Made by a program: the position numbers and the translations under genes. Under the pieces are notes generated by a model that did no database searches, was not told the DNA's origin, and saw only the letters and a program-made list of their open reading frames with translations. A stretch of DNA of 64,000 nucleotides. Origin: Pocillopora damicornis (Eukaryota). Position 1 is the first letter of the stretch, and every line of letters begins with the position of its first letter. Location of the stretch: positions 1 through 64,000 of the forward strand of contig NW_020846166.1 of assembly GCF_003704095.1 (NCBI RefSeq), given 5' to 3'. Of this stretch, positions 1,700 to 21,198 are shown piece by piece.

Positions 1700-1950
1700 C
1701 CAGGCACTTTGAGGGTGTCCACCAGGGAAAAGGCCCAAAACAGGGCGTGATGGAATTATTTGTTCAGAGATTGAAAGTGCTCTCTCAGCAACTTTCAGTT
1801 TCGAAAAACCTTTCCCAGAAGTAGGAAAAACCGAAAGGAAACGCGTTCGTTTCCCACACTGTGTGGAGCCCCCACAGGTTGAAACCACCCCGCGCACGAA
1901 GTGGTTCTCACATAGTGTGTGATGACCGTGATTAAATTTAAAGAAAAATT
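1700..1950 (-). promoter_or_regulatory. Orphan copy of the A-type STING upstream module with ISRE
   Basis: Aligns by eye to ~6435-6670. ACTTTCAGTTTC at 1791-1802. No STING ORF adjacent. Confidence 0.55.
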
Positions 1951-2099
1951 ACTGCACCATCAGGCTTAACAATGCTATTCTCAGCTCGCTTGAATTCCAA
2001 TACCACCACTAATATGGAGAACAGTTAACATTAGCTTGCTGGAGATAGCTCTGCCATATTCAGGCTTTATTCAGGTTTGGTTCACCGAGGAGCATCGAA

Positions 2100-4440
2100 T
2101 TGCCACAGAATGAAGTTGAACTGAAAACCTGTTCACTGTCTATGGCTCTTGGAAATTTCCTCACCCACCCTTGGAGGGCCACTTGGAATGGGATAAGGTG
2201 AGCATTCTAAAAGCTCAATTGTACTTGTAGAGGAATTATACCTTCTCTGAGGGATGGGGAAGTGAATTCTTAACATAATCTTCTCTGTGTGAGAGGTGCA
2301 AATAAGGGTATTTGAACATATTCTACACACACACACACACACAAATGGGTATTTGCAAGATGAAGAGGGAATCTCCCTAAGAATTCTTTCAAACTAGTTT
2401 TACAATTAAGGAGCACTAAGGCCTTCCCTGAGTGTTTTTTTTTTCTCTTAGCAGTGATTGATTTGTAACTAAGACTTGTCCATAGTAAAATCTTGGCAGC
2501 TTATTCTACAAATAAGAGAACTTCTGGCTTGAAACAAAAAACACTTAAACCTGTAGGAAAGCTTGAAGGAGGGAGGGAACCTCCTTCAACCAAAACAAAG
2601 TTGTTGGTTATAATTTTTCCCAAACTTACAAGTAATGGTGTTCTAGTACAGTCAGAGCTGACGCACAGGTGCTTTGTGGTAAGTTTTATTTTTAACCCTT
2701 TCAATCTTAAGAGTGACAAGAATCTAATTTCTCCTTAAAGCAGTACTACTGAAATATTTATTATAAAAACCATGAAAGGAAATGATTGCCAACCTAAAAA
2801 GCTGTGATGTTGTAATCAAATTATTGATAATTAAACCCTAAGGTTAAGTGAAAAACATCAGGCTTATTGAAACCAAGGGTATTCAATTAATAACACAGAG
2901 GAAGTAGATGCCATAACAATGCTTGCAAAGTAGGCAATTGGTTTGTTTGCCTGGTCAACCTTCTTTCCAGGAGAAGGGAGCACCTTCATAGAGAGATACT
3001 GAAGCATACAGAGGCATGCAAAGACTGAAAGCGCACAGTGAAATTTATCACTCTTAGTGGGCAGGGATCTTGACATTCTTGGTGTGCAGCTTGTTTCTAA
3101 ATTTGCTCCAGTATTCCTTCCCTGTTGAGCCTACACAGTGGAACATCACTGGCCTTAAGTAGACCTGGGATCTGCATGAGGAGAGTTGAATTAGCACAGA
3201 ATGAAGTTGAACTGAAAACCTGTCCACTGTTTGTGGCTCTAGGACATTTCCTCACCCATCCTTGGAGGACCACTTGGGATGGGATAGGGTCACTGAGCAT
3301 TCTTAAAGCTTAAGCTTATATATAGAGGAATTATATCTCTTCTGGGGGACTGGGGAAGGGCGATTCCAAACAAAATCTTTTCTGTGTGAGGGGTGAAAAT
3401 AAGGATGATTGAACATATTCTACACAAAAAAGTACTTTGGGTAATTGCAAGATTTAGAGGGGATCTCCTTCTGAAGTCTTTCAAACCAGTTTTACAATTA
3501 AGGCTACTTGATAACTGAGGACTTCACTGAGTATTTTTTTTACTTAGCAGTTACTGATTTATAACTAAGATTTTTCTGTAGTAAAATCTTATTGGTAGCT
3601 TATTCTACAATTGAGGGAGCTTTTGGCTTGAAACAAACAAAAAAAAACTCTTAAACCTGTAGCAAAGCTTGAAAGGGGAGACTCTCCTTCAAAGAAGCAC
3701 CAAAGGTGTTGGTTATAATTTCTCTCAAACTTATAAGTACTGGTATTCTAGCACAGTCAGATTTAACACACAGCTGCTTTGTGTCATGTTTTATTTTTAA
3801 CCCTTTTAATCCTTAGAGTGACAAGTATCAAATTTCTCCTTAAAGTAATATTGCTGAAATATTTATTATAAAGACTGTGGAAATAAAGAAAATAAATGCC
3901 AAACTAAAAAGCTGTGATTGAAACACAAATTCTCCTTGTAAGGAAATTTGCAACTGAGAATAGTAGGAAGAATATGCATACTGATATAGAGGTGTAAAGG
4001 GATAATTAATATGTTTACAGAATAAGAGCACAACAATCATCAATTTAAGTATTTCACTGAGCAAAGCAAAGAAAAATGAAAACTGAGAAAAACTAAACTA
4101 TTCAGCCTGTTTTATAAATCTCTGTTCATGTTTACGTTACTATCCCACTGAGGGCTCACTACAAATTATGTAATCTGCTTGGCTATAAGGAAGGGCAAAA
4201 TAAATTAGGCTATAGCCTTCTCCACTTACACAAATTAAAGGCTGTGCCTTTGAATGTTTTCAGAACACAATCAACATAAATCTGCAAGATGAGGACTGTC
4301 CCTTTACTAACCTCTCTAAAAAACAATGTTAGTCTCCTTAACCAACATCAAGTGGTATCTATTATGGGTGAAATAAAAGTATAAGCCACAAGATTTAGAT
4401 AAAGATTTGTAATCAACATCTTTGCCCCTTCAAAGGCTCC
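2100..4440. repeat. STING 3'-flank segmental repeat, internally duplicated (units ~2100-2810 and ~2810-4440)
   Basis: The block GAATGAAGTTGAACTGAAAACCTGT occurs at ~2108 and ~3199 with colinear downstream sequence; further copies at ~7020 and ~7684. Confidence 0.85.
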
Positions 4441-4568: not shown

Positions 4569-6283
4569 TTAGAGCTGTTCTTGTTCTGGTCTGTGCACTC
4601 CATTAGCTTCTGGATTGTGCATCTCAATGTTGGCAGCGTTATGCATCCCAATCAGGACATTTGAGATCTCATTTGGATCATTTCCTGAAATTGGCACTAA
4701 TTCATAAGTCCCTCTGCACTCTTCGGAGTTCTCCAGAATTTCCCTCAATTTTTGGATGAATAACACCACCTATAAGTAAAAATGAAGAGAAGTTCCAGTT
4801 AGATGTGCATCCCACCTCAAACAAATCATATTTATGAGGACCAGTCCTAAGGGGGGGAGGGGGGTACTTCCTAATAAAAGGCTAATGGGGATGTGCTACT
4901 GGATGGCTTGCATTTCCACTGCTAGATTTACTATTTAATAATGGGTTTGCAATTTCAATGCAGTTCCAACAATGGGGTTGCACTCTTCCAGATTTTGGGG
5001 TGAGACAATGTATGCCCAATTGGGAAGATTCATGGTTAAATGAGTCAATTCATTTTAAGATGAGCTACTTAAAAGGCTTTCTAAGGCAGATACATAAAAC
5101 AGAAAGTGACTAAGTTGGGATAGTGAAAGAAACATTCACTTAAAAGCACCTTAGATGGGATCTACAAATGACCACAGAATAGATTATAATGGGTTGAGGG
5201 AGGGTGGGTTCTAAGAGGCCAGTGGCATATACACAGCAGAAATTGACCCAATTACCCAGGGATCAGCCACAATATTGCTTGTGGTAATTAGATCAGGATT
5301 CTCTTCCACTTTGAAAATCAAAGAGAAAATACTAGAAACTTGCCTACCTGATGATCCCGCTCCTCACGATTAAAGGAGGCGTCTGCATGCTCAGACATAT
5401 CATAAAGGGACATCAGAGGTGTGGCATACTCCAAGATAAAGTGGTACCTTTCTACTGTTCCATCAGGGCGGGGCATTTCTATCTTATGTACCGAATGCTT
5501 GTAAATTCTTTCCTTAATTCCACCCCTACTAATTTTAAGCTCTGGGAGATTACCGACCCATTTTACCCTTGGGTCTGCGTCTTTGATGTCAGCACAAGTG
5601 AAGCACGTTTTGGGCAGTAAAATGAATAGCTTTTTCCTTGTTATTTCATAACGAAAAAGCTCCGATCTGCCAATCTGATCTTTCAGTTTTGGCAGTACCA
5701 GCTTCAGATAACCAAAGTAGTAGCTCCAAGCCAGCCCATCAGCCACATTCTTGTTTTCTTTTTCGTTTAAATCCGATGTTTCCACAGGAGAGAGCTGTCG
5801 GAGACCCACAAGGTACAACAACTGCGGAGCCACGAAACAGTTCAGAAAAAAGAAAATGGCGAATTCTGGGCGAGAGAAAACTTCGTATTGTTCATACAAC
5901 TGATAACATAATATGAGAGCGGAAGCAATAGCAGCGACTAAAATACACTTGCCATAATCGAAGGTGAAAGTGGTCTTAAAAATACCCTTCAACTTTCCTT
6001 GATATCTCGTGCGTTTGTGTTTGAACTCCTCAGACAACAGGGGCAACCTTCGAAATAATTCACCGAAAACAAAACTGAGGGTAAGCAGGGCAGCTGTAAA
6101 CACCAGGAAATGAAACTCCTTCTCTTTATCTTTCACCGCGAAGAATAGCGTCGCGCCACTTATCACAACCATAATAGCTGAAGTGACAGTAGCAGTTTTC
6201 CCACGACGCTTGAAAAGTGGTCCAAAGCCGTTATTTTCTTGCTGAGCTAAGTCATCTCCTCGAGGAAGACGATTTTCAGCCAT
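4569..6283 (-). CDS. STING1: STING paralog A (stimulator of interferon genes), 2 exons: 6283-5348 and 4769-4569, ~378 aa
   Basis: N-terminal hydrophobic TM segments followed by STING hallmarks [41 protein letters not shown] and EYATPL. Phase-0 GT..AG intron (CAG|gtaggc ... ttatag|GTG) joins to exon 2 [12 protein letters not shown]... Confidence 0.95.
4851..5258. mobile_element. Putative non-autonomous element with GGGGGTACT...CCCAATTACCC ends in the STING A intron
   Basis: G-run plus TACT at the left end and a degenerate complementary end at the right. Absent from the introns of B, C and D. Confidence 0.45.
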
Positions 6284-6394: not shown

Positions 6395-6560
6395 ATTTTG
6401 GGAATCCCCTAGATAAAAACTCTGACCTTGATTGGCCAGGAGTCTTGAGGGTGTCTTTGGGCTTCCCCCCGCGAGGGGAAATTCGGAGATTGAAAGTGCT
6501 CTCTCAGCAAGTTTCAGTTTCGAAAACCTTTTTCCGGAGGAATGTTAAACCGAAAGGAGA
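6395..6560 (-). promoter_or_regulatory. STING A promoter cassette (kB / CCAAT / kB-like / ISRE)
   Basis: GGGAATCCCC 6400-6409; ATTGG (CCAAT on -) 6431-6435; GGGCTTCCCC 6459-6468; AGTTTCAGTTTC 6510-6521 (ISRE consensus); AAACCGAAAG 6547-6556. Confidence 0.7.
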
Positions 6561-6814
6561 ATGCGTTGGTTTCCTAAACCGCGTGGAGCCTCCTTAGGTT
6601 GAAACTACCTCGAGCACGAGGTGGTTCTCACATCATGTGTAAAGACCGTGATTCAATTTAAAGAAAAATTATTTCAGCTTTCTCTCTCTGTCTAGGTTAT
6701 TGTCCAGCTAAAGAGAGAAGAACTATCTCGATCCTTGACTGTTGTTATTATTAATGACATTCAAATTCATATGCTTTTTCTAATAATTAATAATTTGAAC
6801 TTTACATAGGGGCT

Positions 6815-8299
6815 TTGATGTTGTAATCAAATTATTGATAACTAAACCCCATGGTCAAGTGGAAAACATTGGGCTCGTTGAGACCAAAGGTATTCAATAA
6901 ATCACAAGGAGGATTATTCTTGGTGTGCCGCTTATTTATAAATTTGCCTCATTATTTCTCAGGAACATCACTGGCCATAAGTAAACCTGGGATCTGTATC
7001 AGGGGAGTTAAATTGTTACAGACTGAAGTTGAATCGAAAACCTGTCCTCTGTTTGTGGCTCCAAGAAATTTCCAACCCACTCTTGGAGGGCCTTTTGGAT
7101 TTGGATAGGGTGAGGATTCTAAAAACCTTATGGGTATTTATAGAGGAATGACATCTCTTGTGATTGATGGATGGGGGAAGGTGATTCTGAACAAAATCCT
7201 CTCTGTGTGAGGGGTGCAATTAGGGATATTTTTAAACATATTCTACACAAAAGAATACTTTGGATACTTGCATGATTTAGAGGGGATCTCCCTATGAATT
7301 CTTTCAAACCAGTTTTACAGTTTAGGCAACTTGATCACTAAGGCCTTCCCTGAGTGTTTTTTTTNNNNNNNNNNNNNNNNNNNNNNNNNNNNNNNNNNNN
7401 NNNNNNNNNNNNNNNNNNNNNNNNNNNNNNNNNNNNNNNNNNNNNNNNNNNNNNNNNNNNNNNNTGTAATCAAATTATTGATAATTAAACCCCATGGTCA
7501 AGTGGAAAACATTGGGCTTGTTGAGACCAAGGGTATTCAGTTAATCACAAGGAGGATTATTCTTGGTGTCCAGCTTATTTCTAAATTCACTCCATTATTC
7601 CTTCCCTGTTGAGCCTACACAGTGGAACATGACTGGCCTTAAGTAAACCTGGGATCTGCATCAGGGGAGTTTAATCACCACAGAATGAAGTTGAATTGAA
7701 AACCTGTCCACTGTTTGTGGCTCCAAAAAACTTCCTCACCCATCCTTGGAGGGCCTTTTGGAATAGGATAGGGTGAGGATTCTAAAAGCTTATGGGTATT
7801 TATAGAGGAATGATATTTCTTCTGAGCAATGGATGGGGAAAGGTGATTCCAAACAAAATCCTCTGTGTGAGGGGTGCAATTAGGGATATTTTTTAACATA
7901 TTCTACTTTGGATACTTGCATGATTTAGAGGGGATCTCACTATGAATTCTTTCAAACCAGTTTTACAGTTTAGGCTACTCGATAACTAAAGCCTTGCCTG
8001 AGTGTTTTTTTTCTTAGCAGTTTTGTAACTAAGAATTTTCCGTAGTGAAATCTTTGTAGTTTATTCTACAATTGAGAGAACTTCTGGCTTGAAACAACAA
8101 AAAAATTGAAAGCTGTGGCAAAACTTGAAGGGGGGAGACTCTCCTTCAAAGAAGCACCAAAGTTGTTGGTTATAATTTTTCCCAAACTTATAGGTACTGG
8201 TGTTCTAGTACAGTCAAAGTTAACACACAAGTGCTTTGTGGCAAGTTTTATTTTTTTAACCTGTTAGATCCTAGAGTGACAAGTATCTAATTTCTCCTT
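6815..8299. repeat. Two further tandem copies of the flank repeat between STING A and B
   Basis: TGTAATCAAATTATTGATAA...CCCATGGTCAAGTGGAAAACATTGGGC at ~6822 and ~7464, colinear with 2810-3840. Confidence 0.85.
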
Positions 8300-8973
8300 N
8301 NNNNNNNNNNNNNNNNNNNNNNNNNNNNNNNNNNNNNNNNNNNNNNNNNNNNNNNNNNNNNNNNNNNNNNNNNNNNNNNNNNNNNNNNNNNNNNNNNNNN
8401 NNNNNNNNNNNNNNNNNNNNNNNNNNNNNNNNNNNNNNNNNNNNNNNNNNNNNNNNNNNNNNNNNNNNNNNNNNNNNNNNNNNNNNNNNNNNNNNNNNNN
8501 NNNNNNNNNNNNNNNNNNNNNNNNNNNNNNNNNNNNNNNNNNNNNNNNNNNNNNNNNNNNNNNNNNNNNNNNNNNNNNNNNNNNNNNNNNNNNNNNNNNN
8601 NNNNNNNNNNNNNNNNNNNNNNNNNNNNNNNNNNNNNNNNNNNNNNNNNNNNNNNNNNNNNNNNNNNNNNNNNNNNNNNNNNNNNNNNNNNNNNNNNNNN
8701 NNNNNNNNNNNNNNNNNNNNNNNNNNNNNNNNNNNNNNNNNNNNNNNNNNNNNNNNNNNNNNNNNNNNNNNNNNNNNNNNNNNNNGGATGCTTGCTTTCT
8801 AGCTTAAGAGTACAAATAATCAATTTTTGGCCTCTCAGGGTCTGACACTGTGTTTCTTAACACTCAGAAACACAGCTCTATACATGTGCAATGTATAACA
8901 AGAGTTCCTTTGTTGTCCATACTGTTGCTGTGGAGCAGCAGCCACATATCTGCTCTATTGCCTAGTTTGCTCA

Positions 8974-9887
8974 TCAGTCTCCTCTTCTTAATCTCTTTTT
9001 GGTTGCACTGTGCATTCCCACAAGGACATCCGCAATCTTGTTTGTGTCATTTCCTGAAATTGGAACCAATTCATACTTTCCTCTGCATTCCTCAGAGTCA
9101 TCCAAAATTTCCCTCAGCTTATGGATGAATAACACCACCTAGGTTACAACGAAAATGGTTTCAGTTGGTGTAAGCATTAGCTTAACCCTTCAGCTCTCAG
9201 TAGTGATTGACCTGTAACTTCTCCACATAATATCCATACATCATCCAGCAAACAGTTGATGAGAATACTCAAACTTATCAGATAGAAGTTGTTATCTTGA
9301 TTTAATGCCAAATTCTAGTGTATAAGCTAGAAAAGTGAATAAACAATCAGATCTTGGGAGTTAAAGGGTTAAAAAAAAAAAGGGTATTAAAAAAAAACTA
9401 CCTCAAAAAGAAATTCTAAGAACAAATATTTGTTATCATATATCTAAAATCACACAACAGATCACACTTGTTCACCTGATGATCCCGCTCTGGACCAGTC
9501 AAAGGGGCCTTTGCATGACCAGACATTTCGCACAGGGACATAAGAGGCGTAGCGTACTCCAAGACAAAGTGGTACTCTTCCACTGTTCCATCTGGGCGGG
9601 GCATCTCTATGCGGTGTACCGCATGCTGGTAACTTCTCTCCAAAATTCCAGCCCTGTTAATTTTACTCGCGGGAAGTTTGCCGGCCCATTTTACCCTGTC
9701 ATCTGCTTTGGATATTTCTTCAAATGCATAGCACGTTTTTGGAAGTAAAATGAAAAGCTTTTCGTCTGTAATCTTATGACGAAATGTGTCCGATTCGGAA
9801 ATACGATATCCCAGTCTTGGCAGCACCAGCTTGAGATAACCAAAGTAGTAGCTCCAAGCCAGCCCATCAGCCACATTCTTGTTTTCT
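8974..9887 (-). CDS. STING1: STING paralog B, 3' part (exon 1 partial 9887-9476, exon 2 9138-8974); 5' end lost in the gap at 9888
   Basis: [17 protein letters not shown]...[11 protein letters not shown]...EYATPLMSL. Same intron position as the other copies. Exon 2 has a +1 indel relative to copy C and ends ...[12 protein letters not shown]. Confidence 0.88.
9182..9372. mobile_element. piggyBac-type MITE (TTAA-CCC...GGG-TTAA) in the STING B intron
   Basis: TTAACCCTT...GGGAGTTAAAGGGTTAA termini with TTAA on both sides. Confidence 0.75.
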
Positions 9888-10344
9888 NNNNNNNNNNNNN
9901 NNNNNNNNNNNNNNNNNNNNNNNNNNNNNNNNNNNNNNNNNNNNNNNNNNNNNNNNNNNNNNNNNNNNNNNNNNNNNNNNNNNNNNNGTTTCAACTCGCT
10001 GTCTGATTGGTTAATTAGGACAATACGTTAAGGTGAGGTGTCTCTGTGGGGATGGGGTAAGTATTGTACATTAATCGACCTAAAACAGATAAACAACTAA
10101 AACAGATAAACAACGGACAAAATTCGAGTGGCGTGTGTTACCCGCAAGTTATGTAGAAGAATGTGTGGGTGCATTTCCCAAAGGAACGAAGGAAATATGA
10201 TCCCATTTGGCACTTGAATTAAACGCCTCTTGATGCCCCTCGATGCTCTTCGGTGAACCAAGCCTGAATATGGAGCAAGCAAGCTACTTTTAACTGTCCT
10301 CCATGTTAATGATGGTATTCGAATTCATGTGAGTTGAGATTTAG

Positions 10345-10508
10345 CAATGGTTCATATGTCAGCGTGCGTTCATCGAGATATGAAGCACGCGGGATGTTTG
10401 GAGAGCACGAAAGGTGCGTAAGAGTTGCTCCAGGCTTCTTGAGCGCTCTCCAAACTTCCCAAGGGCTTCATATCTCGATGGACGCACAGCTGACGTAAGA
10501 ACCAATTG
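10345..10508. mobile_element. Palindromic (hairpin) MITE-like repeat
   Basis: ~60-bp imperfect inverted arms: GTCAGCGTGCGTTCATCGAGATATGAAGC...GTTTGGAGAGC versus GCTCTCCAAAC...GCTTCATATCTCGATGGACGCACAGCTGAC. Confidence 0.7.
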
Positions 10509-10699
10509 TTTTATAACATTTTCAACCCAAAGGAAAATTCTTTTCTCGAGGGATTTGTTTGCTGATGTCATGAGCGTGCACAATAGGAATATGAAGCACG
10601 CTCGTGTAATTGAATTTGATTAGACAAATTTACTAGCTCTGTTAAAAATACCATTGTTAAACCTGTTGGTGACGTAATTTGTCTTTAATTTAATTAAGG

Positions 10700-10975
10700 T
10701 CAAACCTCGTGCTCGAGGTGATTTCAACCTGCGCGGGCTCCACGCGGTGTAGGAAACCAACGGGTTTTCCTTTCGGTTTTTCAGTCCTCTGAGATAGGTT
10801 TTCGAAACTGAAACTTACTGAGAGAGCACTTTCAATCTCCTAACAAATTATTTCATCACGCCCTATTTGAGGATACTACCCAAGCGGGGGACAGCCCAAA
10901 GACAAACACAAGACTCTTGGCCAGTCAAGGCCAGAGTTTTTATTTAGAGGATTTCCCAGGTAAATCATATCGGTT
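10700..10975 (+). promoter_or_regulatory. Second orphan A-type upstream module, upstream of the B promoter
   Basis: Reverse complement of ~6385-6620. GAAACTGAAACT 10804-10815 intact; CCAAT mutated to CCAGT and the proximal kB site altered. Confidence 0.55.
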
Positions 10976-11299
10976 TATGCAGAAGTTTTATGTCATTTGG
11001 CAATAGCATTAATAACCTCTTGATCTTCCTTGTTCTCTTCTATGATCCTAGCCAAGATTAAGGCAGAGCTAATTTTAACTGGCCCTCGCATAAATATGGA
11101 TAATCCAATATTGAAGCAATAGCTATCATTATAAACCCTGATTTAAAATTTTAATTTTTTTCTAGTTTCTATGAGGACATGCAACCTTCCTGTGAAAACC
11201 ACAATTTTTAAACTTGATAGACTTTCAAGGAGTAGAGGGGCTCCAAAAGGTATAGGTTAGGGAAAAGTTTTTATTTTAGTTTTTCATTCGTGAGGGAAA

Positions 11300-11460
11300 G
11301 ATCTCTAGAAACCGAAAGTTGCTGAAAAAGCACTATGAAACTTTGATTAGCCCACCCCTTCAGGGGGGTTTTCCCCCAGGGGTACACCTTATAAACACCC
11401 TGACGTGCTCCTGGCCAATCAGGTCCAGAGAATTGATGTGGGGGATTACCCAAGTAAATG
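11300..11460 (+). promoter_or_regulatory. STING B promoter cassette
   Basis: GAAACCGAAAGT 11308-11319; GGGGTTTTCCCC 11365-11376; CCAAT 11415-11419; GGGGATTACCC 11441-11451. Confidence 0.7.
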
Positions 11461-11569
11461 GCGTTCTATTTGAATAAGTGATCAGCTCTCAACAATTTGA
11501 CGCATTTAGTGGTGGTCAACTTCACGAGTACTACGAGACCATCGAGAGAAAGAAATAGTTTTATCCACC

Positions 11570-11678
11570 ATGGCAGATAATCTTCTTCCCCAAGGAGATG
11601 ACGTAGCTCAGCAATCACATAATAGCTTTGGACCACTTTCCGAGCTTCGTGGAAATATTGCTACGATCACATCAGCTA
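11570..11678 (+). CDS. STING1: STING N-terminal fragment, probably the missing 5' end of paralog B on an inverted contig
   Basis: [36 protein letters not shown] is nearly identical to the N-terminus of copy C. It runs into an N gap and is preceded by a C-type promoter on the + strand. Confidence 0.8.
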
Positions 11679-12615
11679 NNNNNNNNNNNNNNNNNNNNNN
11701 NNNNNNNNNNNNNNNNNNNNNNNNNNNNNNNNNNNNNNNNNNNNNNNNNNNNNNNNNNNNNNNNNNNNNNNNNNNNNNGAAAAACTAAATGATTCAGCAT
11801 GTTTTATAAATCTCTGTTCATGTTTACTTTACTATCCCATAAAGGGCTCATTACAAACTGTGTTATCTGCTAGGCTATAGGGAAGAGTGAATTAAATTAG
11901 ACTATAAACTTCTCCACATACACAAATGAAAGGCTGTGCCTTTGAATGTTCTCACCACACAATCAACATAAATGTGTGAGATGTCAGAGGTTAAAGAATT
12001 CAAAACAACTCAAAGCCTTGAACTATCAAGCCCAGGAAAGGATTGGAGCACATATTGTTACATTTGGCCTCTCAGAGTGTACACCATAACAAAAAGTGAT
12101 ATTTTCAGCTGCCTTAATTTGGTATCTTTTGGGATTGCATGAGATAAAGTGTTGGGCTGTTTCAGTTTAATTAAACTTTGTAAAGAGAGTTTACAGTTGA
12201 TGCATAATTATAAAACCCAAAATTAATGTTATGCCTGAATTTTACAGAAAGGAATGATGAAGTGAGATTTGAAGTTTTCCTTTATAAATTTGTGAAGTGT
12301 GAAATATTCCTGCATGAAACCCAATGAGGACTGTCCCTTTGCTAAAAAACAATATTTGCATAATCAACCAACATCAATTGGTATCTTTTATGAGTGAAAT
12401 AAAAGGTTGAGCCACAAGACTTGGATCAAAATTTCTAATGAACATCTGTGCCCTTTTAAGAAAAGATCTTTTACCCCCCCTTTAAGATCAGGATCAAACA
12501 TCTCTGACACTGTATTTTTTTACACCCAGAAACACAGCTCTATACATTTGTAATGTGTAACAGAGTTCCTTCATCATCCATACTGCTGCTGAGGAGCAGC
12601 AGTCACTTATCTGCT

Positions 12616-14108
12616 CTATTGCCTTGTTTGCTCATCAGTCTCGTCTTCTAAATCTATGTTGCTCGCACTGTGCATTCCCACAAGGACATCCGCAATCTTG
12701 TTTGTGTCATTTCCTGAAATTGGAACCAATTCATACTTTCCTCTGCATTCCTCCGAGTCATCCAGAATTTCCCTCAGCTTGCGGATGAATAACACCACCT
12801 AGGTTACAACGAAAATGGTTTCAGTTGGTGTAAGCATTAGCTTAACCTTTCAGCTCTCAGTAGTGATAAACCTGTAACTTCTCCATAATATTCATAAATT
12901 ATCCAGCAAACAGTTAATGAGAATACTAAAACTTATCAGGTAGAAGCTGTTATCTTGATTTAATGCTAAATTCTTGTTACTAATTTACAAGGAAATGTGT
13001 TTAAGCTAGAAGGGGGAATATACAATCAGATCTTGGGAGTTAAAGGGTTAAGCTACAACAATCAATTACAAAATTTGTATTAAAAACACTACCTCAAAAA
13101 GAAATTCTAAGAACAAATATTTATTATCATATATCTAAAATTATACAACAGATCACACTTGTTCACCTGATGATCCCGCTCTGGACCAGTCAAGGGGGCT
13201 TTTGCATGACTTGACATTTCGTACAGGGACATAAGAGGCGTAGCGTACTCCAGGACAAAGTGGTACTCATCCACTGTTCCATCTGGGCGGGGCATCTCTA
13301 TGCGGTGTACCGCATGCTGGTAACTTCTCTCCAAAATTCCAGCCCTGGTGATTTTACTTTCGGGGAGTTTGCCGGCCCATTTTACCCTGTCATCTGCTTT
13401 GGAGATTTCTCCAAATGTAAAGCACGTTTTTGGAAGTAAAATGAAAAGCTTTTCGTCTGTAATCTTATGACGAAATGTGTCCGATTCGGAAATACGATAT
13501 CCCAGTCTTGGCAGCACCAGTTTCAGATACCCAAAGTAGTAGCTCCAAGCCAGCCCATCGGCCACATTCTTGTTTTCTTTTTCGTTAAAATCCGATGTCT
13601 CTACAGGAGAAAGCTGTCGAAGACCCACAAGGAATGACAATTGCGGAACCACGAGACAATTCAGGAAAAACAAGATGGAGAAACCTGGACTCGAGAAAAC
13701 TTCGTATTGTTCATGCAGCACAAAACACAGTGTCAGAGCGGAGGCGATGGCGACAACCAAAATACTACCGGAATTATTGAAAGTGAAAGTCGTCTTGAGA
13801 ATATCCTTCCAGTTTCCTCGATATCTCGCGTGTTTGTGTTTAATCTCTTCAGACACTAGGCACAATCTTCGTACCATTTCTCCGAGAACGACACTCAAGA
13901 TAAGTAGGGCTGTTGTAAACACCAGGAAGTGAATCCCTTCTCTCTTTTCGTTATCCTTTACTGCGAACAAAAGCATCGCGCTACTAATCACAACCACGAT
14001 AGCTGATGTGATCGTAGCAATATTTCCACGAAGCTCGGAAAGTGGTCCAAAGCCATTATGTGCTTGCTGAGCTACGTCATCTCCTCGGGGAAGAAGATTA
14101 TCAGTCAT
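12616..14108 (-). CDS. STING1: STING paralog C, 2 exons: 14108-13167 and 12798-12616, ~374 aa
   Basis: Full STING motif set ([25 protein letters not shown]). Intron CAG|gtgaac ... cctag|GTG. Acidic tail [14 protein letters not shown]. Confidence 0.95.
12842..13051. mobile_element. piggyBac-type MITE in the STING C intron (same site as in B)
   Basis: TTAACCTTT...TCTTGGGAGTTAAAGGGTTAA. Confidence 0.75.
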
Positions 14109-14219
14109 GGTGGAGAAAACTATTCCTTTCTCACGATGGTCTTACGTTACTCGTGAAGTTGGCCTCAACCAAATGCGTCAAACTGTTGGGAGCAGATCAC
14201 TTATTCAAATAGAACGCCA

Positions 14220-14410
14220 TTCACTCGGGTAATCCCCCAGATGAATTCTCTGGACCTGATTGGCCAGGAGCGCGTCAGGATGTTCAGAAGGTGTACCCCT
14301 GGGGGAAAGCCCTCCCTGACGGGGTGGGTTAATCAAAGTTTCATAGTGCTCTTTCAGCAACTTTCGGTTTCTAGAGATCTTTCCCTCACAAATGAAAAAC
14401 TGAAATAAAA
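14220..14410 (-). promoter_or_regulatory. STING C promoter cassette
   Basis: GGGTAATCCCC 14227-14237; TGATTGGCC 14257-14265; GGGGAAAGCCC 14302-14312; ACTTTCGGTTTC 14360-14371. Confidence 0.7.
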
Positions 14411-15476
14411 ACTTTTTCCTAACCTATACCTTTTGGAGCCCCCCCACTCCTTGAATGTCCGTTGGGTTTAAAAATTGTGGTTTTCACAGGAAGGTTGCAT
14501 GTCCTCATAGAAACTAGAAACAAATTGACTTTAAATCAGGGTGTATAATGGTAACTATTGCTTCAATATTGGATTATCCATATTTATGTGAGGGCCAGTT
14601 AAATTAGCTCTGCCTTCATCTTGGCTAGGCTCATAGAAGAGAACAAGGAAGATCAAGGGGTTATTAATGCTATTGCCAAATGACATAAAACTTCTTCATA
14701 AACTGATACCACCTGTTTAAGGCGTTCCTAGTTCCAACAGTTTACAAGCTCTCTCTGGATCAATTAATATTGTTAATTTCTTCTGGTCAAGCAAAAAGGG
14801 TTCATAAAAATATTCTGTCCATGACTGAAGCACATTGAACCGTAATTAAGACTGAGAAGAAATCCTGCCTAAACCATGGCATCTGAAACACATTTCTGAT
14901 GATTTTAGTATTGAGAATTTGGTGTTATGTAAAACACTTGAGGTATAATGATATTGTTTTCTTCTTTCTCATCACCTGAGATGCATCAAATTGAAAACAT
15001 AATTTTTTGGGGGTTTTCACGGGAATGAAAGGGTGAAGTGATATATTACTAATCAAACCCATGTATGACCTTTATAGCTGGCCATCAAGGCAAGTTTACA
15101 TGCTACAACAGGGGGCAGAGGGGTGGGGTGTATGGATGGAGCCAGGACACTACTTGTCTTGTATGAAAGTGACAATAACTTTCACATTTTTCTGCCTCCC
15201 TCAGACAGTTAAGGACATCAGTATATTTATTAGCTATCAACAAAGTATCTTTAGGATTCCTTGGTATAAAATGCTGTGAAATTACAGTTTCAGTGAACAA
15301 CTGTATCAGAAAAGTGTAAAAAGAAAAAATTTGGTATTTTCACAATAGTACTTGTGTCAGTTGTCTTTATAGACTATACTACTTTCTAAAAATGTTCTCA
15401 GTTTTTTATAGACTGATGTATTTATGTCTCAGATCCCTCCTATAATGAATAAGCAATATCATTTTGTTCACAGCGG

Positions 15477-17685
15477 TCACTGTTCTGGTATTTTCACTTC
15501 ATCAGCTTCCTCATCCATCTCCACATTGGCAGCTTTATGCATTTCAACCAGGATATCTGCAATCTTGTTTTTCTCCTCATCTCCTGAAAATGGAACCAAT
15601 TCATACCTTCCTCTACATTCTGTACTCTTATCCAAAATTTCCTTCAGTTTTCGAATGAACAACACTACCTAAAGGATATGAAAGAGAGAGAAAAAGAAAA
15701 GGATTAAACAAAGTTTAATTATATATAATATAATTATATGTGTAAATAAATCTTGATTATGATCTATCCTTGTGGTGTAGTGCTCGATGTGTTCGCAGAG
15801 TATGATATGTCTAAAAGTTGGACAAATCAATAAGACCTAACTTTTCTGTGAAACCTGCGTTTCACACTTACGCGATCATCAGCCATGAAAATTGGTCTAA
15901 TGACTGCATAGCATGAAACTCAGAGTTACAGAAAAGTTATGTCTTATTGATTTGTCCAACTTTCATATATATATATATAGGTATATGTACATATATTCAT
16001 ACATACATACATATAGGAAATTCATGTTTAACATACAGATGAAATCTTATTTTGCAATTCAAGACTTAATTATCATTTGCTTTGAACATTACAATTAAAA
16101 TGCACATTTTTTGTTCTTTTTGCTCAAAATGACATACAGTTTTTAAACTGTTTGTGAGTTTGTTTTATCAATACAGCACAAGAAGGCAAAGGAGCTGTTT
16201 TAACCACCGAAAAATGGGCTGGGGTAGAAAAATACAGCCTATGGGAACTTTGAAGGAAGTTTTAAACTTTCCTCATTTTACTTTTCTGGTCAATGTATGA
16301 AACAACCAATTTGAATTGCTTTTGGTGTACACATATTTTATCATCAATCTTCAAATTAAAAATAAAAAAAAAAGAACAGAATGTGGTAAGAGCAATTCAC
16401 CTGATATTCTTTTGCTTATTTGTTTTTTTTCTTCCTGTTGTTATCTTAGCCTAAAATCATCTGCAATCCTCCAAAACCTAACAAATACATGAATGCTATT
16501 CCCTGGGTGCTTCAACATCTGGTGTCTGACCTGACACATACTGGTGTCCAGGCTCTATGGCTAATGCATAATGTAAGCTTTCACATTGAGGCATGGAGAA
16601 CTACTTGACAAGCACATAAAAACTCTGAATGGAAGAGATAACATTTTTCACATGCTTCTCAATTGCTTTTCTCAGGCCTGTGGTAGGAGGCAGTAAAAAA
16701 ATTAAATTACATAACAATCCAAGTGTATCAAAAATGGTCACCGCACTACCTGGTGATCCCGCTCTGGAGCCGTTAATTGGGCGTCTTGGAAGTTAGACAT
16801 ATCATGAAGGGTCATCAGAGGCGTGGCATACTCCACAATAAAGTGGTACTTTTCGTTTGTCCCATCTGGCATCACTATTTCATGTACCGCATGCTTGTAA
16901 CTTCTCTCCTTAATTCCTCCCCTGTTAATTTTACTCTCCGGGAGATTGCCGACCCATTTTACCCTGGAATCCGCTTCCTCAATGTCATCACATGTGAAGC
17001 ACGTTTTTGGAAGTAGAATGAAAAGCTTCTTGTCTATTATCTTATGACGAAATGGGTCCGATTCTGATATCCGTTGTTCCAGTCTTGGCAGCACCAGCCT
17101 CAGATAACCAAAGTAATAGCCCCAAGCCAGCCCATCAGCCACATTCTTGTTTTCTTTTTCGTTCAAATCCGATGTCTCTACAGGAGAGAGCTGTCGAAGA
17201 CCCACAAGGAACGACAACTGCGGAACCACGAGACAGTTCAGGAAAAACAAGATGGAGAAACCTGGACTAGAGAATACTTCGTATTGTTCATACAGCCCAA
17301 GACACAATATTAGAGCGGAAGCGATGGCGACGACTAAAATACTACCGGAATTATCGAAAGTGAAAGTCGTCTTGAGAACAGCCTTCCAGTTTCCTCGATA
17401 TCTCGCGTCCTTGTGTGTAATCTCTTCAAACACTAGGCACAATCTTCGTACTATTTCTCCGAGAACGACACTCAAGGTAAGCAAGGCTGTTTTAAACACC
17501 AGAAAATGAATCCCTTCCCTCTTTTCGTTCTCCTTCACTACGAACAAAAGCACCGCGCTACTAAATACAACCACGATCGTTGATGCGATCGTAGCAATAT
17601 TTCCACGAAGCTCGGAAAGTGGTCCAAAGCCATTATGTGCTTGCTGAGCCACGTCATCTGCTCGGGGAGGATGATTATCAGCCAT
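15477..17685 (-). CDS. STING1: STING paralog D, 2 exons: 17685-16750 and 15668-15477, ~375 aa
   Basis: STING motifs ([36 protein letters not shown]). Intron CAG|gtagtg ... tttag|GTA. Confidence 0.95.
15814..15963. mobile_element. Palindromic MITE in the STING D intron, followed by a (TA)n/(TACA)n tract
   Basis: AAAGTTGGACAAATCAATAAGAC.TAACTTTTCTGT is mirrored by ACAGAAAAGTTA.GTCTTATTGATTTGTCCAACTTT. Confidence 0.75.
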
Positions 17686-17799
17686 GGAGGATAAAACTAT
17701 TCCTTTCTCACGAAGGACTTTTCTTACTCGTGAAGTTAGCCACAGCTTAATGCGCCAAATTGAAGAGAGCTAACCTATTACTCAACTTGAACGCCATTC

Positions 17800-17960
17800 A
17801 CTTATTTGGGGAATCCCCTAGATGAATACTCTGGATCTGATTGGCCAGGAGCCTCATCGTGGATATCGACAGGGTGTACCCCCCTGGGGGAAAGCCCTGA
17901 ATTAGGGCGGGTGACTCGAAGTTATAAAGTGCTCTCTCAGCAACTTTCACTTTCGAGATA
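17800..17960 (-). promoter_or_regulatory. STING D promoter cassette, within the divergent interval shared with the SIMC1-like gene
   Basis: GGGGAATCCCC 17808-17818 (reverse complement GGGGATTCCCC, classical kB site); TGATTGGCC 17838-17846; GGGGAAAGCCC 17887-17897; ACTTTCACTTTC 17943-17954 (GAAAGTGAAAGT, IRF-E). Confidence 0.72.
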
Positions 17961-18339
17961 TCTTTCCCAGTGGAATAAAAACCAAAAGAAAATCGTTATT
18001 CTTAAATGGCCCGTCTGGTGTCCACACAGGCTAGAGAATTTGTAAACCCCCCTAGGCCCCTTGTGGAAAAATTTTGGTACTCGCGTGAGAGCCTTACAAA
18101 CGGTTATTCAGCGTTAATATTCAAATACTTGCTATTACGTGAAAGCCAATGAAAATATAAAACTTACAATAGTTTGTTCCTCATTGAATTATTTTTTGTG
18201 CTTGGCGTAGAGAGGAGCATCGAGGAACATCAAGGAGCATCAGGGGACGTTTAAAGCCAGTGCCAATTGACATAACACTTCTACGTCCTTAAAGAAAATA
18301 CATCTACAGAAAGCGAGCATGGTTGTGTGAAAGATGTAA

Positions 18340-21198
18340 ATGGCGCAAAACGACGTGATTGTCATCAGCGACGATGAAGGAGACTTTGTCAACAAAAAGA
18401 TATCGGAGAAAACACAAATTATTGTTATCGATGAGGACGATGACATTGTCGAATTGACGGAAACGACGAGCAATGTCATTGAAACAATCGCAAGTAGTCA
18501 AGTTAAATCTGAGTCTTGTCGTCCGTTGAAAAATTTGAAATTCAGCGAAAATGGCGTTAAGAGGCTCCAAGCCCAGGTAAAGCTCATCGACATTGGAAAA
18601 TCGAAGAAGCCACTGAAACTTAAAGCTGTGAAACCAGAGAATGACGAGGTAGTTGCAACCAGTTCAACCGAATTAAAAGAAACCAATTCATCGGTGCAGC
18701 AGGTGAGAATTGAGATGGAAAGATTCCCGTTCTTCCGATACTTATTCTAAAACAAAGTCTTAGTGTTAATGTATTGTTTGGCCATTGGTTTCTTTTATCC
18801 AAGTACTGTAAGCATATCGAAGTATAGGGTTATACGGAAATCTTGCTGAGTTTTCTTCAGAGCTTTTCTTCTAAGCTCTGAAGAAAATTGAATTTCTTGG
18901 AACAAGAAAAATTACAACCCAATCTCTTTCATTCAGTGTGGTGTCTGGCCAGATCTTCATGAGCATCCCTAATCCAGATAAACTAGTAACCAAGCACAGT
19001 GTTTGGATGTACTTTCTAAACCACAAGGAGGCTTATTAATATCAAGGTTCCTTCATATCATCGTAAAGCTGTTCAAAGTTGGTAATGTTGTTACTTAGGT
19101 TAGTCTTGCTTACTCAGTGGACAACAACTGCCATACTGGGGCTTATACTGGTATTGGCTGCATTGAGTTACCAGGACAACATGTGTTACTTTTCCTGGAC
19201 AGGATGGTGGTTCACTGCAGGGTATCCATTATGCTCACTTACTCTCATGCTTAAAGTTGTGATTGTCACCAACCGGATTCTCTTGACCGAAAAAAAAAAA
19301 AAATAGAAACACTTGAACATTTACAGCCCTGACTGGTACATTTTGTAAATGTTTCATAGTTAGATTAAGAGCTTGAATCAATCTAAGTAGAGGGATATTT
19401 TTCTAATAATCTTGCTTTCCATGAAACCCTACGATATTGAAAGGGGACACAAGAAGAAAGGTTGTGTAAAAACTCTTTGAGGCTTTGTCAAAAGGTTTTA
19501 TAGTTTCCTTGAATTTCTATGGTTTTTTTGGGTTATGATTGGGTCCTCTACAAAAAATACCAAATTGACTTTGACTTTGACTTTTAAAAAAGTTGATGGA
19601 TGCATTACAAGTCTTTTTGCAGTCATCAAGTGTCACTGAAAGTTTGTTGTCTGAGGTGAAGAGAGGCAGTGTTTTGGTTAAGTGTGCTAACTACAAAACT
19701 CTCATCTTTCCTGTTGACTGATTCCTAATTCTCTATATGTTTCCAGGTTAAGACTGAAGAAGTGGATGCACACAATGGGGAGTTAAGAATGAACCTCTTT
19801 GAGAAATTCTGGTCTGGTAAACAAGAAATCATCAGCAACAAACCTGCAAAAGTCATTGAAAGTTTTGATGACTCATACAAACACAAAAAGGCTAAAAGCT
19901 CTTGTCAGTCTCCATCTTCATTAAAGCAGAGGAGACTCAACGCTGAGAGTTTCTCTCCTAAGAAGAGGCCTCCTTTACATGGGATTGTGAGAGATGGAGA
20001 ACTTTTACATTACACAACACCTTTACACTGCACAGTTCCACTGAAAAAATTAGAACTTGCAAGCAAACAAGAAGAAAGCTTGAGCAAAACCTTCACTGAA
20101 AACCAGCTGAATTCACTGCAAGCTCTTAAAGAAGAGAATTTTCACAAAACCTACCTGGAAACTGTCACCAGCTTTATGAGTCCACGTCGTAAGCCACCTC
20201 CATCCCTTCTGTTTTACCTGTTCAATAATATCTTGCTCTCCAAGCAAAGTGGCTGTGGTACAGAATGTTTTAGAATTCTCTTACGGATTCAAGAATTGCA
20301 TCCTGCTGAGGTGGCACAGATGTTACAACAGAAAATTACATGGGAGTTTGTTTCCATGATAGTGAAGCTAGCAGGATGCACACAGTCTCACACAGTGGAA
20401 AGCTTTAAAATGAATGCCTCCATGGCTTTGTCTTTTCTTGTAAGTGTCATGGAAAAGGAAGTTGAGAAAAAGAAAGTCTGCCTTGTCAAGACAAGTGCGC
20501 ACCGATTTTTCTCAGTAGATAGACTTTCGGGTAATTTTCATGATGTTGTAGAGTGGGTTAAAAAGGCCACAGAAGAACATCTCGAGGAACAATTGGACCA
20601 ACATTGTGGGCATAACTTCTGTCCACTATATTTATTACAAAGAATGCTTCAGTTGTCAGTGTTAGTCGGTCAAAGACCAGAGGACACTGCTGTAAGACTA
20701 GCCAATGATTTAGTTTTGGCTTATGTAGAGTTACCATCTATCAAGTATAAAACATTGTTGCTTCAGTCAATACAGTCACATTTATTGAAGACAAAGCTGA
20801 TTGAAATTGTGGTGAAAAACTGTTGTTCTATTGATGAAGAGTTAGAGGAGGAAAGAATGACTAGCTCTGGATTGAAAAATGTGGTCTTAAACTTCAAAAG
20901 ATCTCCACCTCTCTCTGATGGCATTGTTAGCACTACAAACTGTGAAGAATTTGTCATGCTTCTTGCATATTGGCTGCAAAGCTTTATTTTCTGTCACAAG
21001 AGGTCTTTAATGGCAAAAGGAAAAGAATCACAGCGAGTTTTGTCCCTAAATGATGTGGAGGTACTGAGGAGAATTGAACAGGAAGTGTCTATTTTGACAG
21101 CTCGTTTAGAGTTATTATGTGGCTCTACACTCTCCCCAAGAAGCTACCAATTACTGCAATTAATCTTGTCACTAAAGAGTTTTGCACAAATTCCATAG
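18340..21198 (+). CDS. SIMC1: SIMC1-like protein (SUMO-interacting motifs plus Nse5-like helical domain), 2 exons: 18340-18702 and 19747-21198, ~604 aa
   Basis: N-terminal SIMs with acidic flanks (VIVISDDE, IIVIDEDDD, IVELT). The C-terminal segment FMSPRRKPP...ILL...LLRIQELHPA...W resembles the human SIMC1 FVSPQHYPP...ILL...LMKIQQLHPA...W region as recalled. In-frame phase-0 GT/AG intron. Confidence 0.75.

Follow-up and report, generated by a model that had tools for sequence, protein, structure and literature searches.

The first 64,000 nucleotides of contig NW_020846166.1 (forward strand; assembly GCF_003704095.1) from the coral Pocillopora damicornis, referred to here as the window, contain a cluster of genes for the innate immune receptor STING. 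A short set of candidate regulatory sites, or cassette, recurs upstream of these genes: an interferon-stimulated response element (ISRE) of the IRF-element (IRF-E) type, a second kB-like site, a CCAAT box and a proximal kB site. Here, the evidence that these sites are maintained by selection is described, together with the possibility that they make coral STING genes responsive to NF-kB and IRF.

The STING cluster and its promoters

The cluster consists of two-exon genes on the minus strand (A, X, C and D) and a plus-strand fragment (B), and the closest named relatives are in Stylophora (68%), Oculina and Orbicella. Exon 1 is complete in A (5345..6283, ATG 6283), C (13164..14108, ATG 14108) and D (16744..17685, ATG 17685), and encodes the Pfam domains STING_TM and STING_LBD in all three. 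The D intron (15663-16743) is confirmed by spliced RNA contigs from four runs, and the coding part of D exon 2 is at 15478-15662. Copy X comprises exon 2 and the 3' part of exon 1 (8786..9887, minus strand), its 5' part and promoter being lost at the gap 9888-9987. Fragment B comprises the first 36 codons of a STING exon 1 (109 bp, 11570..11678, plus strand, ATG 11570) and is cut by the gap 11679-11778. Protein searches used the exon-1 reading frames; exon 1 and exon 2 were kept unjoined and gaps were left unfilled.

B and X are most simply explained as two halves of one C-like gene, because both closely resemble C and both end at broken gap edges. Specifically, X, which lies on the same strand as C, shares 90% identity with it, and the 1.7-kb block between the two 100-N gaps (9988-11678) is a 92% inverted copy of C 14000-14708, which covers the promoter and first codons. 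Each of these gaps (9888-9987 and 11679-11778) has STING exon 1 on one side and non-STING sequence on the other, so the sequence is not continuous there. Thus, the promoter B block probably belongs to the promoter-less copy X. This would imply an inversion of the 1.7-kb stretch, present in the genome itself or only in the scaffold.

Upstream of A, B, C and D the elements have the same order, from distal to proximal: ISRE (−238 to −269 from the ATG), second kB-like site (−185 to −212), CCAAT box (−152 to −159) and kB site (−126 to −133). In promoter A (minus strand), the ISRE GAAACTGAAACT at 6510..6521 (−238) is followed by a conserved block, TTGCTGAGAGAGCAC, that reaches down to 6496; the second kB-like site GGGGGAAGCCC is at 6459..6469, the CCAAT box (GGCCAATC) at 6430..6437 (−152) and the proximal kB site GGGGATTCCC at 6400..6409 (−126). 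Promoter B (plus strand) has the ISRE GAAACCGAAAGT at 11308..11319 (−262), the second kB-like site GGGGGTTTTCCC at 11364..11375, the CCAAT box (GGCCAATC) at 11413..11420 and the kB variant GGGGATTACCC at 11441..11451. Promoter C (minus strand) shares with B the ISRE GAAACCGAAAGT (14360..14371, −263) and the kB variant GGGGATTACCC (14227..14237, −129), and has its CCAAT box (GGCCAATC) at 14258..14265 (−155); its second kB-like site, GGGGAAAGCCC at 14302..14312, is on the plus strand, antisense to the gene. Promoter D (minus strand) combines the ISRE GAAAGTGAAAGT at 17943..17954 (−269), the CCAAT box (GGCCAATC) at 17839..17846 (−159) and the kB site GGGGATTCCCC at 17808..17818 (−133) with the same second kB-like site GGGGAAAGCCC, on the plus strand at 17887..17897. 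Hence, every motif quoted in the original prediction is found at its stated place, in the same order, in all four promoters.

The ISREs of A, B/C and D all match GAAANNGAAA and the IRF-E rule G(A)AAA(G/C)(T/C)GAAA(G/C)(T/C), a rule that is also followed by the ISREs in Stylophora, Orbicella, Oculina and two corals from ENA. The consensus of the clustered promoters is TYCGAAASYGAAARTTGCT. The proposal that both GAAA cores are invariant around a variable spacer is correct, and the variation is limited to S-Y. An inverted repeat, TGCTG-N5-AGCA, adjoins the ISRE (6496-6509, 14346-14359 and 17929-17942) and is kept in nearly all robust-clade promoters. Exon 1 of both C and D contains the bare word GAAAGTGAAA as well (13779-13788 and 17356-17365), antisense to conserved TFTF-motif codons, so the word is not evidence by itself. 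The kB sites were said to vary within consensus. This is true of A and D, which fit GGGRNWYYCC or the 11-bp p50 type GGGGATTCCCC, but B and C miss the strict consensus by one base; the Stylophora orthologue retains GGGGATTCCCC where B and C read GGGGATTACCC.

The prediction also counted six modules. Four are promoters, and the other two are gene-less remnants. One is an orphan A-type copy (10704..10973, plus strand) with an intact ISRE block at 10804-10829, a CCAAT box changed to CCAGT and a kB site changed to GAGGATTTCC. The other is a truncated copy (1763..1951, minus strand) in which the ISRE block alone is kept, at 1777-1802. The loss of the CCAAT and kB sites from the A-type orphan is the decay expected of a promoter without a gene, albeit in a single case. 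An inverted repeat of ~165 bp (78% complementary) at 10345-10508, upstream of this orphan, is probably a small mobile element.

Evidence that the sites are constrained

Comparisons at three levels show the motifs to be more conserved than their flanks: within the window, between orthologues and across at least six coral genomes. Within the window, an alignment of A, C and D has 22 invariant columns out of 26 in the motifs and 129 out of 305 in the flanks (Fisher P=2.5e-5). Among the 11-column windows of this alignment, conservation peaks at the CCAAT box, the kB site and the ISRE block, and all 8 ISRE core bases are invariant. Three further blocks are conserved: TTGCTGAGAGAGCACT right after the ISRE, TTTGRCGCATT near −70 and CTTCACGAGTA in the leader.

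The orthologous comparison uses the Stylophora promoter pairs A/Spis2, C/Spis1 and E/Spis5, where E is an unlinked STING gene described below. In these pairs, 67 of 70 motif bases are identical, versus 566 of 854 flank bases (0.66; P=7e-9). The flank value is close to the identity at four-fold sites, which is 0.72 against the Stylophora orthologues and ~0.40, that is saturated, against paralogue E. The A-type and C-type paralogues predate the split from Stylophora.

The broadest comparison covers 17 non-redundant promoters from this genome, Stylophora (five genes), Orbicella (two), Oculina (two) and four further ENA assemblies, and the same layout is found again in Orbicella, Oculina and the ENA corals. 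A kB site is present at −110 to −155 in 16/17 promoters, with GGGGATTYCCC in 13/17; a sense CCAAT is present at −145 to −180 in 14/17; and a sense GAAANNGAAA is present at −200 to −290 in 11/17, for which the chance probability is 0.02. The CCAAT box CTGGCCAATCA is invariant in A, C and D, RCCAATSR is found in 14/17 promoters, and most genes have a CCAAT-to-kB distance of 25-26 bp. An unbiased 7-mer count recovers the kB and CCAAT elements, with GGGGATT (15/17) and CCAATCA (13/17) at the top, and no count exceeded 9 in 200 simulations; the leading words of the distal control region are rich in A/T and occur in at most 5/17 promoters. The three complex-clade promoters, from genes that group with Acropora and Montipora, have the kB site in 3/3, CCAAT in 1/3 and GAAAAGGAAACT at −255 in 1/3. 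The ISRE is thus missing from two of these three, and has been lost in the E/Sp-STING3 lineage. From this distribution, the kB site is common to robust and complex stony corals, and the ISRE belongs mainly to the robust clade. Since the cassette sites have been retained in several coral species whose surrounding DNA has drifted, they are very likely functional.

Is the cassette used by other genes? The pattern GAAANNGAAA-N45-105-CCAAT-N14-26-GGGRNTTNCC has 4 matches in the 234-Mb genome, all in the STING cluster, and a reversed-pattern control has 0. In the genome-wide scan for other immune genes that the original prediction proposed, the strict pattern thus hits the STING cluster alone. Similarly, the 26-nt ISRE block occurs genome-wide only at the six modules of this window. 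Looser two-part patterns occur at a few other places in the genome, including a repeated element on contig C4107; at these places no downstream gene could be named, and the open reading frames have no Pfam match. The C4107 element is ~1.2 kb long (619361, 635688, 647693 and ~643900), has an antisense GAAAGTGAAA, CCAATCA and GGGGATTCCCC with STING-like spacing, and may be a gene-family promoter or a mobile element.

Transcription and the likely start site

Spliced STING D contigs and C exon-1 contigs are present in four RNA runs from three studies, field and laboratory, with no stated challenge. For D, contigs cover the bin 17600-17783 and are essentially absent from the bin 17784-17967, which holds the kB, CCAAT and ISRE sites; for C, there is nothing over 14104-14655 in 3/4 runs. 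A conserved initiator (Inr)-like block, TTTGGCGCATT (17745..17757, minus strand), lies at ~−66 from the D ATG and is the presumed D start. From the contigs and the motif together, transcription most likely starts at the Inr-like GCGCATT, ~55-65 bp downstream of the kB site. With this start, the kB site would be ~60 bp, the CCAAT box ~90 bp and the ISRE ~200 bp upstream. An NF-Y box is expected to read RRCCAATSR in sense orientation, ~60-100 bp upstream of the transcription start; the ~90 bp of the coral CCAAT box is measured to a start that is itself inferred.

Three other features of the RNA contigs concern the neighborhood of these promoters. One of the four runs has a single contig that passes from the D exons through the D 3' untranslated region and the whole C promoter into C exon 1 (14010-15662), which may be read-through between tandem genes; in the other three, the D transcript ends near 14700-14815. 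On the far side of promoter D, contigs of a divergent neighbor gene (region 18119-18500) begin at 18119-18344, so that the two presumed starts share an interval of ~340 bp in which the D ISRE is no more than ~170 bp from either. A single weak joint from 17474 to 18209, with 28 letters at one of its ends, may point to an upstream exon.

Unlinked STING paralogues

The genome has two more STING genes, both unlinked to the cluster: E on contig C2287 and F on contig C3358. Paralogue E (C2287:1236-1392) has GGGGATTCCCC at −140 and two CCAAT boxes, and no ISRE was found in the 1391 bp upstream on its contig. Its Stylophora orthologue shares this layout, with kB and CCAAT sites and without an ISRE, and is 100% identical to PDB chain 8EFN (Sp-STING3), a protein that prefers 3'3'-linked dinucleotides (PMC9980059). 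E and this orthologue read AWNYY and EYASNL where other STINGs read AWSYY and EYATPL; AWNYY and EYASNL are the pocket residues tied to the 3'3'-dinucleotide preference. Paralogue F (C3358:94552-94830) has TCGAAACTGAAAGTT at −258 and CCAAT at −156, and no kB-like site was found within 1500 bp. The cassette had been proposed to lie upstream of every STING copy. This is the case for A to D; for X no promoter is visible, its exon 1 being interrupted by the gap 9888-9987, whereas E is without an ISRE and F without a kB site.

The layouts of E and F, together with the pocket residues of E, indicate that promoter input and ligand pocket differ together between paralogues. It is conceivable, though rather unlikely, that the paralogues are separately wired channels that jointly form an interferon-free, self-amplifying network, with NF-kB and IRF input to the clustered genes, whose proteins have the usual pocket residues, NF-kB input only to the Sp-STING3 orthologue and IRF input only to F. 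If this were true, ligand specificity and transcriptional input would have co-evolved.

Neighboring features

Much of the intergenic DNA around the STING genes is occupied by a dispersed repeat of ~0.5-0.8 kb, with copies that are 79-89% identical at 1029-1425, 2103-2736, 3075-3841, 6822-7364 and 7465-8299. This repeat flanks the gap 7365-7464, which, like the gap 8300-8785, lies in repeat-rich intergenic DNA and touches no motif. In Orbicella and on two complex-clade contigs, a gene of the fumarylacetoacetase family (FAA_hydrolase) is found a few kb downstream of STING, which suggests that this neighborhood is an old synteny.

What might the promoters respond to?

The best reading of the cassette, and one that we consider probable with some reserve, is that the ~300 bp upstream of each clustered STING gene is under purifying selection and forms a compact, TATA-less, NF-Y-based promoter that has been made responsive to NF-kB and IRF. 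From distal to proximal, such a promoter would consist of the ISRE TYCGAAASYGAAARTTGCT with TGCTG-N5-AGCA, a variable second kB-like site, the CCAAT box, ~26 bp, the p50-type kB site GGGGATTCCCC and the Inr-like GCGCATT. The NF-Y-type CCAAT box (CTGGCCAATCA) would give basal activity. Candidate factors for the other sites, which the original prediction took the host to have, are indeed encoded: four IRF DNA-binding domains and a single Rel-homology protein are present in the genome. The single coral NF-kB and one or more of the four IRFs would bind the kB and ISRE sites, and because of this binding STING transcription would rise on NF-kB or IRF activation, in the manner of an interferon-stimulated gene (ISG) but free of interferon. 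In a sea anemone, 2'3'-cGAMP both activates NF-kB and leads to induction of IRFs, so such wiring could feed the STING pathway back on itself in a positive loop. The self-amplifying loop itself is a more tentative proposal, possible rather than probable.

Work on the sea anemone Nematostella provides support for parts of this scheme. Nematostella NF-kB (Nv-NF-kB) binds GGGAATTCCC and GGGAAAGCCCC in electrophoretic mobility shift assays and activates the TRAF3 promoter through such sites (PMC10329013); the second kB-like site of C and D, GGGGAAAGCCC, is nearly the same as the TRAF3 site GGGAAAGCCCC. The mRNA of nvSTING rises on infection with P. aeruginosa, and cGAMP sends NF-kB to the nucleus and induces IRFs and ISG homologues, with the STING dependence of the NF-kB activation not established (PMC8713801). 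In addition, STING1 is up in poly(I:C)-activated Nematostella immune cells (PMC13319465). The published induction of Nematostella STING is thus consistent with coral STING promoters being inducible.

Several points weigh against a promoter driven by NF-kB and IRF. In Nematostella, knock-down of IRFs or of STING left the cGAMP response unchanged (PMC8713801). The proximal kB site of B and C bears what its sequence predicts to be a weakening change. We know of no established route from cnidarian STING to IRF activation, and literature searches on coral STING promoters returned no relevant paper, nor binding, reporter or induction data. The transcription start was inferred from contigs and a motif; it is bounded, and its exact position is beyond contig resolution. 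The binomial P values for the positional windows in the 17 promoters, 1e-15 to 1e-35, are overstated because the windows were picked after seeing the data and the promoters share ancestry. No cassette was found in the 800 bp before the ATG of Nematostella and Actinostola STING, where a 5' untranslated-region intron could hide the true promoters; these stretches contain weak look-alikes alone (AAAGTGAAATTGC at −97 in Nematostella). The word “ancient” in the original prediction therefore reaches only the stony corals: it suits the kB site, which spans robust and complex clades, better than the mainly robust-clade ISRE, and neither is seen in the two anemones. Lastly, the STINGs are expressed in unchallenged runs, so the sites may serve basal expression.

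This last point leads to the main rival. The cassette could be a basal or cell-type promoter only, using IRF, NF-kB and NF-Y for steady expression in immune-type cells, with no induction and no loop. The D and C contigs in four runs that state no challenge are what this predicts, immune cells of Stylophora and Nematostella express IRFs, NF-kB1 and pattern-recognition receptors at baseline (PMC13319465), and the knock-downs without effect on the cGAMP response point the same way. However, both infection and poly(I:C) induce STING in Nematostella, kB and ISRE sites act mainly as signal-responsive elements in every studied system, and basal use and induction are mutually compatible. A purely basal promoter is in our view rather unlikely, although it deserves more weight than any other alternative. 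A less probable alternative, which we regard as doubtful, is that the sites are not an IRF/NF-kB module at all, and that GAAAGTGAAAGT is instead bound by a PRDM1/Blimp-1-type repressor, TGCTG-N5-AGCA by a Maf-type factor or the G/C palindrome by some other protein. In nearly all robust-clade promoters, conservation does continue past the cores of the ISRE to include RTTGCTG-N5-AGCA, and the TGC-N7-GCA geometry of this repeat resembles the Maf recognition element. Maf genes also mark immune cells in Nematostella (PMC13319465). On the other hand, an ISRE spacer that varies as S-Y alone between fixed GAAA cores follows the IRF-E rule, GGGGATTCCCC is a p50-type site of the textbook kind and cnidarian NF-kB binds closely similar sites (PMC10329013). 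Moreover, extra proteins may add to IRF and NF-kB rather than replace them.

It could also be argued that the cassette has no function, and that the promoters are alike through recent duplication or gene conversion alone. Indeed, B and C are 92% identical over 700 bp, and all copies in the window are paralogues of one cluster. Yet the motifs are kept where the flanks have reached or passed neutral divergence. This is seen in comparisons of paralogues that predate the Stylophora split, in comparisons of species, and in unlinked paralogues with promoters that BLAST can no longer align. In addition, a gene-less copy has lost two of three sites. The cross-species, motif-versus-flank and orphan-copy results already contradict a lack of function, which is very improbable. 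An NF-Y-based promoter with NF-kB and IRF input is still the reading we favor.

Relation to known systems and functional implications

The combination of kB, ISRE and CCAAT elements is a classic one among the promoters of vertebrate immune genes. For example, the vertebrate promoters of major histocompatibility complex class I (MHC-I) and beta-2-microglobulin have an enhancer A kB site, GGGGATTCCCC, an ISRE and an NF-Y-bound CCAAT/Y box. These are the same three element types in a compact promoter of ~200 bp, and the 11-bp kB sequence is identical. The arrangement differs, since MHC-I promoters place the kB site distally and the CCAAT box proximally, whereas in the coral the ISRE is distal and the kB site proximal. 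In addition, the coral STING promoter lacks the SXY module, the gene is unrelated and the DNA is not homologous. The interferon-beta enhanceosome (PRDI-IV) similarly places IRF and NF-kB sites close together upstream of the start of an antiviral gene, a likeness that implies combinatorial control. Its sites are contiguous over ~55 bp, whereas the coral sites extend over ~150 bp with a CCAAT box between them.

A closer relative in terms of organism is the Nematostella TRAF3 promoter, which likewise belongs to a cnidarian immune gene and has clustered kB sites, one of which (GGGAAAGCCCC) closely matches the second site of C and D. The TRAF3 sites are bound by Nv-NF-kB and are required for reporter activation (PMC10329013). 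TRAF3 has experimental proof and no reported ISRE/CCAAT arrangement, whereas the coral STING promoters rest on conservation. For the proposed loop there is a parallel in mammalian STING1, which is described as interferon-stimulated and subject to positive feedback (Ma et al. 2015, EMBO Rep, as cited in PMC12166436). The likeness is that a receptor switches on a pathway which in turn boosts transcription of the receptor's own gene, the coral loop being a proposal. The mammalian loop acts via secreted interferon and a STAT1 site; the coral has no interferon and has candidate kB and IRF sites that would act directly.

What are the implications for cnidarian immunity? The value of the finding lies in the strength of the evolutionary footprint and in the natural variation among paralogues. 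Cnidarians have an interferon-like gene program without interferon, and the transcription factors that drive it have resisted knock-down tests. The coral cluster offers a short, evolution-footprinted promoter with discrete kB, CCAAT and IRF sites, on a gene family that has been biochemically characterized in Stylophora. It also comes with natural variants: one paralogue with kB but no ISRE, another with the ISRE but no kB, a kB site that is weakened, and an orphan copy that has decayed. Together, these allow the direct question of whether IRF and NF-kB control antiviral receptors in an animal without interferon.

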